From sequence record PQ464595.1: DNA of 64,000 nucleotides, one strand, 5' to 3'. The translations under genes and the position numbers were made by a program. Under the pieces are notes generated by a model. The model did not search any database. It was given only the letters and a program-made list of their open reading frames with translations, and was not told the DNA's origin. This document shows positions 23,628 through 44,813 of this stretch, in pieces (positions within the stretch are counted from its first letter, which is position 1; every line of letters begins with the position of its first letter).

Positions 23628-23707
23628 TAGTGCGAGGGGATGGACTTGAACCACCGACACGGAGTTACCCTAAGATAATCTTGCTCTACCATCTGAGCTA
23701 CCCTCGC
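23628..23707 (-). tRNA. tRNA-like gene with aberrant anticodon arm (anticodon not assignable)
   Basis: Perfect acceptor GCGAGGG/CCCTCGC, D and T arms; anticodon/variable region about 5 nt too long with irregular pairing (AGATTATCTTAGGGTAACTCCG). Confidence 0.6.
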
Positions 23708-30881: not shown

Positions 30882-30956
30882 TGTGGCTCATACCAGATTC
30901 GAACTGGTGTGGACAGAGATTTAGAGTCTCCCGCTACGCCTCTCAGCTAATGAGCC
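30882..30956 (-). tRNA. amber suppressor tRNA (anticodon CTA)
   Basis: Cloverleaf GGCTCAT/ATGAGCC, arm GGAGA-CTCTAAA-TCTCT, A73. Confidence 0.9.
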
Positions 30957-43172: not shown

Positions 43173-43294
43173 TAGTCGGGAATTGTGGACTCGAACCACA
43201 TCTCACGGCTCCCTATGCAATTGTATTGGTTGCTGTGAAATTCCATTACAAGAATTTATGTTATACGGTGTGCTAACCCTTACACTAATTCCCG
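43173..43294 (-). tRNA. tRNA-Pro(AGG)-like gene interrupted by a 47-nt CAGCAA insert (43219-43265) at 29/30
   Basis: Deleting the insert gives CCGGC-ATAGGGA-GCCGT; C1-G72, A73 and G37 fit Pro identity. Confidence 0.7.
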
Positions 43295-43491
43295 ATAAGT
43301 ACCTTTCGGTACTATTTATTGTCATTCTGTTTCTTGGCTGACGAGCCTCAGAAATAATTCGAGGACAGCGTTTGCTGTGTCTGAGCTTTAATAACAGCGG
43401 ATTATAGTCTAGCTGTGACGACTCATGATAAAAATAAAACAAATGAAAAAAATCTGGAAAGATTTATTCACCTACAACACGCCTACAGGGA

Positions 43492-43853: not shown

Positions 43854-43929
43854 TAGTGCTCCAAGTAGGATTTGAACCCACGGCTTCCTCATTACAAGTG
43901 AGGCACTCTACCAACTGAGTTATTGGAGC
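43854..43929 (-). tRNA. tRNA-Thr(TGT)
   Basis: Cloverleaf, loop CTTGTAA; 3' CTA. Confidence 0.95.
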
Positions 43930-43976
43930 AGTGGTACATTTTTATTTATCAATATAAAAACGACCAAAAAGATTGT

Positions 43977-44226
43977 GTTGAAGAAGCGAAGCAACCAGGC
44001 AACCTGACAACCCAGCAACCTTACAATCAAGTTGAATGCCGTTTCCACAACCAAGCAAGTTATAATAACTGTTCAGTATAAACGGAGCAAACTCTTTAAT
44101 AGTAGATTACATAAATTGTAATTGACCATTCTTCATATGAGAAGATAAAAGCGTTGAAATTCATCAACGTGCTTCTTCAACAAGGGGAGTTAGAGAGAGT
44201 AAGTTAAGCGACTACACTCTAACTCC
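43977..44226 (-). ncRNA. candidate structured RNA with tandem 8-nt GGTTG(C/T) repeats
   Basis: 11-bp closing stem GTTGAAGAAGC/GCTTCTTCAAC, inner hairpins, five 8-nt-period repeats at 43991-44030, upstream 10-bp hairpin GGAGTTAGAG/CTCTAACTCC. Confidence 0.6.
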
Positions 44227-44234
44227 AATTTTGA

Positions 44235-44813
44235 TTAAAGAACCTGAAGTTCTTTAAACAGTACTGCGAACTTGTCATCAATTTCGATTTCAAGTTTGTT
44301 GTTGATGTAAGCGAGTTTGTCGCTCACACTTTCTTGTTCTTGCTTCAACTCGACATACAGGGTATTCAAGTTGTTGTGCATCACTTCAGAGATGCCACCT
44401 ACACGAGTGTAAGTACTGCGATACTCTGAAGAACTCTCATGCATATCCTGTACTTCACGTACAGTTTTAGCTAGGAGTTCGGCATCCGTGGTTTTCATTT
44501 TCTCACGGAACGAAGCCAGTACTTTCATCTGACCTTCAATAAGAACCTTACGGCTCAGAAGGGTATCAACGGAATTACCGTCGATTTCGGTTCCATTTGC
44601 TTTCTGTAAAGCGGCACGAATGACGTTAATCGCTTCGTGGACATTCAACGCAGTTTCCACTGCTTTGAAATTGCTGCTGTTAACAGCTACGATAGCTGCT
44701 TTTACTTCTTCAGGTGTTGCTGAATGGTGTACGTCTTTTTGTTCAAAACGCAAACCGGACTTTTGGCCTAAATCTTTAACCAGGCGATGTGCCTTACGCA
44801 ATGTCAATTTCAT
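44235..44813 (-). CDS. coiled-coil hypothetical protein
   Basis: 192-aa helical ORF with its own TGAAACG promoter. Confidence 0.75.
   Translation of the reverse strand: MKLTLRKAHRLVKDLGQKSGLRFEQKDVHHSATPEEVKAAIVAVNSSNFKAVETALNVHEAINVIRAALQKANGTEIDGNSVDTLLSRKVLIEGQMKVLASFREKMKTTDAELLAKTVREVQDMHESSSEYRSTYTRVGGISEVMHNNLNTLYVELKQEQESVSDKLAYINNKLEIEIDDKFAVLFKELQVL

Follow-up and report, generated by a model that had tools for sequence, protein, structure and literature searches.

RNAs of the CsrB/RsmZ type carry multiple GGA motifs in hairpin loops and titrate a protein, their partner CsrA. Triplet arrays of another kind are bound by ring proteins: the trp leader recognised by TRAP contains 11 G/UAG triplets with spacers of 2-3 nt, and HutP sites are made up of 3+3 UAG. 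In type III toxin-antitoxin systems (ToxI type), RNA repeats of approximately 36 nt (34-45) are located upstream of the gene coding for an endoribonuclease toxin. The tRNA gene cluster of phage T4 also gives rise to stable small RNAs of unknown function, which are presumably processed from shared transcripts. Finally, the Y RNAs of bacteria and phages are molecules of 80-130 nt whose 5' and 3' ends form a long stem that closes a loop (PMC4201824).

The window analysed here, that is, the whole stretch of 64,000 nucleotides, comes from the 366-kb genome of Erwinia phage Kaldavass (PQ464595.1, 100% identity), a jumbo phage whose relatives are XbC2, CBB, GAP32, BF, the pEa_SNUABM phages and Yersinia phage fHe-Yen9-04. 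The minus strand carries the 26 tRNA genes detected by ARAGORN in the window as well as the annotated genes around the element described below. Among the ARAGORN predictions there are a tRNA with a four-base anticodon (uuag) at 23630-23707 (-) and a tRNA with the amber-reading anticodon CUA at 30883-30956 (-). The element fills the gap of about 300 nt between an ORF of 192 aa (44235-44813, minus strand; phrog_25230, PHROG 1e-93) and the gene of tRNA-Thr(UGU) (43857-43929, minus strand; ARAGORN and Rfam), which is the next gene on the 3' side in the members of Mimasvirus and Eneladusvirus. It is a structured RNA with a length of about 220-245 nt that is encoded on the minus strand and selected as an RNA fold, and it sits in a region full of module RNAs.

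Each of the systems mentioned above shares some features with this RNA. Like CsrB/RsmZ, it is a stable non-coding RNA with many copies of a short motif, which could hold several protein copies. However, the phage motif is UUG, it lies on one unpaired strand in strict 8-nt phase instead of GGA in loops, no gene for CsrA was found in the phage genome and titration is putative. The likeness to the TRAP and HutP sites is that, in a single strand, copies of a trinucleotide that never changes are separated by spacers whose sequence varies but whose length is fixed, as is expected when identical subunits each read one triplet. On the other hand, the period of the phage array is 8 (not approximately 5-7) and its five units are inside a stem beside a structured core; in place of at least nine (G/U)AG, or 3+3 UAG, with spacers of 2-4 nt and a ring protein, there are five UUG with 5-nt spacers and no TrpBP match. 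Neither TRAP (TrpBP) nor Hfq, CsrA or a TROVE-domain protein was detected in the phage with Pfam models. As in the case of ToxI, a repeat-containing RNA gene adjoins a protein gene in one operon, but the period is 8 nt, the RNA is located downstream of the ORF and the protein matches no defence-system model (no PADLOC match).

The RNA resembles the T4 small RNAs in being a stable phage-encoded RNA among tRNA genes, although there is no similarity to them and the covariance model built for the new RNA finds nothing significant in the T4 genome. With the Y RNAs it has in common that its 5' and 3' ends form a long stem around a large structured loop. In contrast, its length is about 220 nt, neither ARAGORN nor the Rfam tRNA model reveals a tRNA-like domain in 43964-44226, and there is no match to the Y_RNA/YrlA families or to any other family in Rfam. 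A Y RNA or YrlA would also have a stem with a Ro60 site and a Ro60 (TROVE) gene in the same genome, but the Pfam model TROVE found nothing in the whole Kaldavass record, whereas the control genomes did match.

Fold of the RNA and its presence in RNA-labelled libraries

On the minus strand the parts of the element follow one another, from 5' to 3', in the order P0, 5' strand of P1, P2-P4, core, array, 3' strand of P1, CACAAUCUUUUUGG and P8. The hairpin P0 (44186-44226) starts 8 nt past the stop codon of the ORF, its loop contains UCGCUUAAC, and it is seen in most relatives with variable sequence. An extra hairpin of about 45 nt (CCAGCUAAAGUAAAAAGCUGG...), absent in Kaldavass, is located between the stop codon and P0 in XbC2 (L002:1103-1153) and in a metagenome relative (L020:2080-2130). 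P1 is the closing stem of 11 bp, in which GUUGAAGAAGC (44181-44171) pairs with GCUUCUUCAAC (43987-43977). It is followed by the hairpins P2-P4 (44099-44169; individually about 44152-44169, 44130-44145 and 44106-44122), whose length and sequence differ between clades.

The conserved core (44029-44094), a near-invariant part of about 70 nt, begins with P5 (GAGUU/AACUU, with AACUY on the 3' side) and the junction UGCU. Next comes P6 (CCGUU/AACGG), whose pairs CCGU/ACGG are replaced by CCAU/AUGG in at least two lineages and by CUGC/GCAG in one. After P6 there are a variable linker, the hairpin P7, whose closing A-U and G-C pairs are fixed, and the unpaired, near-invariant stretch CUUGCUUGGUUGUGG (44045-44059). 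The core holds 2-3 UUG in addition to those of the array, which is located at 43989-44028. The tail (C)ACAAUCUUUUUGG (43964-43976) has a conserved U-tract and, judging from the ends of the contigs described below, contains the likely 3' end. Between the RNA and tRNA-Thr there is a conserved A/U-rich hairpin, P8 (43933-43965), with covarying pairs, which is kept even when tRNA-Thr does not follow, as in Munch and Kae01. P8 is not covered by contigs from the RNA-labelled libraries; it may belong to the primary transcript or mark a site of processing.

The 250-nt stretch folds much better than its shuffles on both strands (z -5.3 and -5.9). Covariation was assessed for a structure of four helices (P1, P5, P6 and P7) on an alignment to which isolates, IMG/VR and metagenome contigs contributed 22 distinct homologues. 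With MAFFT, 93.2% of the cells are paired, compensatory changes are seen in 14 pairs and the score for covariation is 0.32, compared with 0.04-0.09 for slid partners; none of 500 shuffles reached the observed values. The model-fitted alignment gives 95.7% of paired cells and 16 compensatory pairs, and over both alignments the covariation is 0.32-0.38 against 0.04-0.10 in the slid controls. Compensatory changes affect 9 of the 11 pairs of P1, where 97-99.6% of the cells are paired (99.6% on the model-fitted alignment), and P6 and P7 also covary. Moreover, the G-U pairs of P1, P5 and the downstream hairpin are possible on the minus strand only.

Contigs assembled from four RNA-labelled public libraries, which belong to four different studies, cover 43967-44221 and stop there. 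Their spans are 43967-44210 (244 nt, 100% identical), 44071-44221, 44022-44212 and, in one run, 43970-44075 plus 44046-44208. The contigs start at 44208-44221, in or near the loop of P0, and in three of the four runs they reach down to 43967-43975; in two of the runs there is no contig at all for the flanking ORFs. This pattern is what would be expected from a discrete, abundant and stable RNA of about 240 nt, bearing in mind that assembled contigs cannot prove strand, ends or abundance and that one library may contain DNA. The RNA is apparently stable. As for its 3' end, an intrinsic terminator would be a G+C-rich hairpin with a U-run immediately behind it; the terminator scan flags the small P2 hairpin only, whereas a U5 tract is located 7 nt past P1 and the contigs end in it. 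The structured RNA with a multivalent repeat array that had been proposed in the preliminary description agrees with both the covariation and the contigs. The 8-nt repeat period and the 11-bp closing stem, also described there, were recovered by Tandem Repeats Finder and by the fold, respectively.

No RNA gene is annotated at the element in any of the phage records examined, and some of them put short ORFs over it. The GenBank record places a 29-aa hypothetical protein inside the RNA on the opposite strand, at 44033-44122 (+), which is probably a false gene call because the RNA covaries at the same place; a similar call exists beside the copy in Munch. A coding function of the element itself is disfavoured by the period of 8, by indels that are not multiples of three and by the covariation of the helices. 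Two further candidates were discarded. A mimic of a host RNA such as rRNA has no blastn match in all the complete E. coli genomes, although mimicry of short structures is still conceivable, and a shared promoter or initiator motif finds no basis in the counts (UCGCUUAA occurs 2 times in the window against 1.8 expected, and ATAAAAATGTA is not repeated). At the gathering thresholds of Rfam 15, tRNAs alone pass in the window and the element matches no family; at relaxed thresholds the best matches are at chance level (SNORD61, E 0.76) and SAM-SAH is on the wrong strand. A description of the RNA was not found in the literature searched. Taken as a whole, the element is almost certainly a real, stable RNA gene that represents a new family.

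The co-encoded protein and the distribution of the pair

The RNA is the 3' part of a short operon on the minus strand, made up of a sigma-70-type promoter, the 192-aa ORF and the RNA. The promoter (44884-44855; TTGAAA, 18 nt, TGnTATAAT) agrees with the consensus in 11 of 12 positions and has an extended -10; the promoter-bearing gene of the preliminary description is this ORF. In 8 relatives the promoter and the Shine-Dalgarno sequence are near-invariant, and they are preceded by a hairpin that ends the previous gene; therefore ORF and RNA constitute a transcription unit of their own, of host type. On the other side of the locus, an HNH endonuclease gene is inserted just 3' of tRNA-Thr in XbC2 (L002) and GAP32 (L004), but not in Kaldavass, CBB or BF, and looks like a mobile insertion.

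The identity of the non-coding stretch is approximately 79-84% in GAP32, CBB and BF, falling to about 73% in Yen9-04. In Munch-type phages of Salmonella and Klebsiella its central part is about 75% identical, and the flanking protein there is 51-70% identical. The covariance model, R1, comprises P1, the P5/P6/P7 core with CUUGC...UUGU and the phased UUG array, directly 3' of an ORF similar to phrog_25230. It recovers 22 distinct members at 147-232 bits and two remote members with E of about 1e-4, with a single copy per genome in Kaldavass and Munch. RNA and ORF are carried by the same 23 GenBank phages, and every phage with either of them has both. In RaK2, 121Q and K64-1 neither the model nor the ORF search gave any match, and the model also found nothing in KVP40 and T4. 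Pattern scans of IMG/VR returned clade members, chance matches and two unrelated microsatellites, and no relatives outside the clade. These microsatellites, in giant-virus bins (L026:2870-2930 and L028:9840-9920), consist of 9-11 units of TTGCTTTG / TTGCTTGG and match the array pattern by chance.

The adjacency of both genes extends beyond the isolates. In 8 of 8 metagenome contigs picked through the protein, the RNA is directly downstream though the flanking genes differ, Munch-type contexts included. In two further contigs, L068 and L069, the protein is 32% and 29% identical, respectively, and the RNA still lies right behind the ORF (model E 1.4e-4 and 2.3e-4). The RNA of L069 has a P1 of 13 bp whose sequence is unrelated (GGAUUAACUAUCA/UGAUAGUUAAUCC), GGUU/AACC as P5, CCCC/GGGG as P6 and five UUG with an exact period of 8, and in L068 the UUG follow one another in steps of 7, 8, 7 and 8. 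In L070, with a protein of about 21% identity, six UUG in steps of 8, 8, 7, 8 and 7, undetected by the model, are located ahead of a tRNA cluster. The ORF homologue of L070 is found between a gene for a PTH2-type peptidyl-tRNA hydrolase and this tRNA cluster (L070:414-779 and 2150-2480), a context that reinforces the link of the protein family to tRNA regions.

The protein family is wider than the RNA family. It includes 48 close representatives and, according to the profile search, at least 177 remote representative clusters, all of them full-length and with about 185-205 aa; the distant homologues have been sampled sparsely. Single-protein scans for loci of remote homologues found nothing. 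Among 47 viral loci of the remote subfamily, a chain of at least four UUG in steps of 7-9 nt is located downstream of the ORF in 2 only, and therefore the protein does not strictly need an RNA with a UUG array. In the remote-subfamily loci that were read, tRNA genes or other structured RNA come after the ORF. Within the remote P0081 subfamily, L072 and L096 contain, 0-380 nt past the ORF, a different non-coding stretch that looks conserved, shares ...GACAGGGTAGACA... and CTAGACACTTTAT... and is followed by a tRNA; it could represent a second RNA that accompanies this protein family. Throughout the contexts read, the protein adjoins tRNA or other small-RNA genes, and the RNA is found beside the protein only.

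The model of the 192-aa protein obtained with AlphaFold2 is all-helical (pLDDT 90.8). Nothing informative came from Foldseek against PDB, VIA-align wide, a PDB sequence profile, Pfam, PADLOC or the ESM Atlas, and the best structural matches were a protein of unknown function and generic helical hairpins. The pI is about 5.4-6.9 and the N-terminus is invariant and basic (M-K-x-x-L-R-K-A-H-R-x-V-K). In the annotation of the Kae01 record the homologue appears as identified by LC-MS/MS, and the corresponding paper reports that LC-MS/MS was run on concentrated phage lysate (PMC11218385).

The phased UUG array and its possible partners

Tandem Repeats Finder detects a period-8 array at 43991-44020, and the five units of the minus strand (44028-43989) are GAUUGUAA GGUUGCUG GGUUGUCA GGUUGCCU GGUUGCUU, with the consensus K-R-U-U-G-Y-W-U. 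UUG is invariant in 90 of 90 units, whereas positions 1, 2 and 6-8 vary, and 18 of 21 distinct sequences keep the exact register of the five UUG without indels. Consensus folds leave the array unpaired. It is under selection as a phased single strand, and the combination of an invariant trinucleotide with free spacers of fixed length, unpaired and beside a structured core, is the signature of repeated recognition by protein; it is not that of an antisense seed or of a terminator.

The array would thus plausibly serve as a multivalent platform for protein binding, a reading that is preferred tentatively. A protein docking platform is likelier than a base-pairing sponge because the RNA is always directly behind the same protein gene. 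The co-encoded 192-aa protein is the sole candidate backed by comparative data, a host protein being the alternative, and its role as partner is possible but considered with more caution than the platform itself. The preliminary description had already suggested that the upstream product could bind the repeats: the strict co-occurrence and the adjacency maintained down to 29-32% identity speak for this suggestion, while the protein has no recognisable RNA-binding fold and its pI is near 6. Besides, co-occurrence within one phage clade may partly reflect inherited gene order.

According to the mechanism that could be proposed on these grounds, the RNA would be freed by processing or by termination near the U-tract. 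Its phased array would then dock several protein copies, or repeating surfaces of one elongated protein, one UUG each, in a process nucleated by the core and P1. The likeliest partner would be the co-encoded helical protein, and the pair would constitute a ribonucleoprotein made from the start of infection, probably with a role in phage small-RNA/tRNA metabolism or in host take-over. In the main variant of this proposal, a host RNA-binding protein would be titrated instead.

A different possibility is that the RNA acts in trans as an antisense regulator, its G/U-rich single strand (the array plus CUUGCUUGGUUGU of the core) pairing with mRNAs of the host or the phage that contain C/A-rich stretches. 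A precedent is the enterobacterial sRNA GcvB, whose G/U-rich seed pairs in this way, and the region considered here is likewise single-stranded, G/U-rich and invariant, in an RNA that appears to be stable and depends on a host-type promoter. Nevertheless, neither strict phasing at 8 nt nor a fixed number of units is expected of a seed. No target has come to light: CAA, the triplet complementary to UUG, repeated four times with a period of 8 gives 2 overlapping matches in the 64-kb window against 0.05 expected, and the sole array of this kind is the complement of the element itself. There is also no match in E. coli genomes, and at the 3' end the U-tract comes only 7 nt after P1, which is atypical of an Hfq-type terminator. 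An antisense role is thus unlikely.

The preliminary description had pointed to the CAGCAA modules of the phage. The repeat junction GGUUGCUG (44013-44020) is indeed the exact complement of CAGCAACC, a sequence present in 8 copies in the window where 1.2 would be expected. The five copies on the minus strand (10212, 11775, 13619, 14269 and 43228) are all in 'GAAUCnnn-CAGCAA' modules, and two of them are inside tRNA-like genes with inserts. One of these genes, at 43173-43294 (-), has an insert of 47 nt with GGAAUUUCA-CAGCAACC and lies under an annotated CDS (43203-43442, 'hypothetical protein') that is probably spurious. Starting from this complementarity, it can be imagined that the GUUGC/UUGCU units form a base-pairing hub or sponge, gathering or sequestering several module RNAs and tRNA-like RNAs with inserts through their CAGCAA(CC) loops.

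Several data agree with such pairing. The predicted duplexes between array and modules in Kaldavass have a mean of -12.6 kcal/mol (best, -18.4), far better than random 14-mers (-7.1 kcal/mol), and they are moderately above random in GAP32, BF and Yen9-04. The insert sequence with CAGCAACC of the neighbouring tRNA-like gene is kept in BF, pEa12 and Yen9-04. Modules and RNA are found together in the 6 genomes tested, none of which carries the RNA without modules, the case that would have spoken against a relationship. RaK2, 121Q and K64-1, which are devoid of the RNA, show few scattered matches to the module pattern. The loose CAGCAA pattern was uninformative in KVP40, where its matches are scattered on both strands.

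However, comparison between phages does not sustain the 8-nt match. In the array UUG alone is invariant, and at the unit position that would have to pair with the first C of CAGCAA, a G is present in only 6 of 90 units. In the modules CAGCAA is fixed and the next two bases vary: by pattern matching, 'CC' follows in 4 of 15 modules of Kaldavass, 1 of 14 in GAP32, 1 of 11 in BF, 2 of 13 in Yen9-04, 0 of 4 in Munch and 0 of 6 in Kae01, and even a single C directly after CAGCAA is missing in the 10 modules of the last two phages. Munch and Kae01 retain the full array despite predicted duplexes that are ordinary, with none of the modules of Munch in the top 10%. Because of the variation of 'CC' and of the unit position, together with the results of the duplexes, the complementarity has to be regarded as peculiar to the Kaldavass lineage. 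What is conserved amounts to a pairing potential of 3-5 bp, which would not be stable unless a protein assisted, and covariation cannot show array-module pairing because both motifs are invariant. Base pairing is rather improbable, and the idea is retained at this low level mainly in a protein-assisted variant.

A purely cis-acting element, which would serve the mRNA of the ORF and the tRNA after it as a 3'-UTR stabiliser, a terminator or a platform for processing and would have no function as a free RNA, would fit the position between ORF and tRNA, the U-tract after P1 and the flanking P0 and P8. Yet a near-invariant core of about 70 nt and a phased array exceed the needs of a terminator or stabiliser, the element is kept where no tRNA directly follows, as in Kae01, and in two runs the contigs cover the element without the ORF. 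For these reasons, an exclusively cis-acting role has a low probability. An assembly hub in which, together with the 192-aa protein, each of the five UUG(C) units would dock the CAGCAA loop of one module or tRNA-like RNA to give a multi-RNA particle is quite doubtful; if true, it would be a phage-made RNA organiser without known counterpart. Finally, phased protein-binding sites at DNA level (iterons, an origin or an R-loop zone), suggested by the strand asymmetry of the array (C/A-rich vs G/T-rich), are very improbable given that compensatory changes and strand-specific G-U pairs in four helices indicate selection on an RNA fold, that a period of 8 bp mismatches the DNA helical repeat and that the stretch is present in RNA-labelled libraries.

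Implications for the small-RNA regions of jumbo phages

The group of jumbo phages to which GAP32, CBB, BF and Munch belong has extensive regions of tRNA and small-RNA genes with an unexplained logic. The results described here add to these regions a well-supported, unannotated RNA family with an unusual, strictly phased motif array, and they remove an attractive but unsupported link between this RNA and the CAGCAA modules, which leaves a cleaner view of the module family. The RNA is tied, in a single operon driven by a host-type promoter and in phages whose hosts are laboratory enterobacteria, to a protein family with at least 177 representative clusters in metagenomes. If both form a ribonucleoprotein, the pair would provide a tractable entry into the role of the small-RNA regions.
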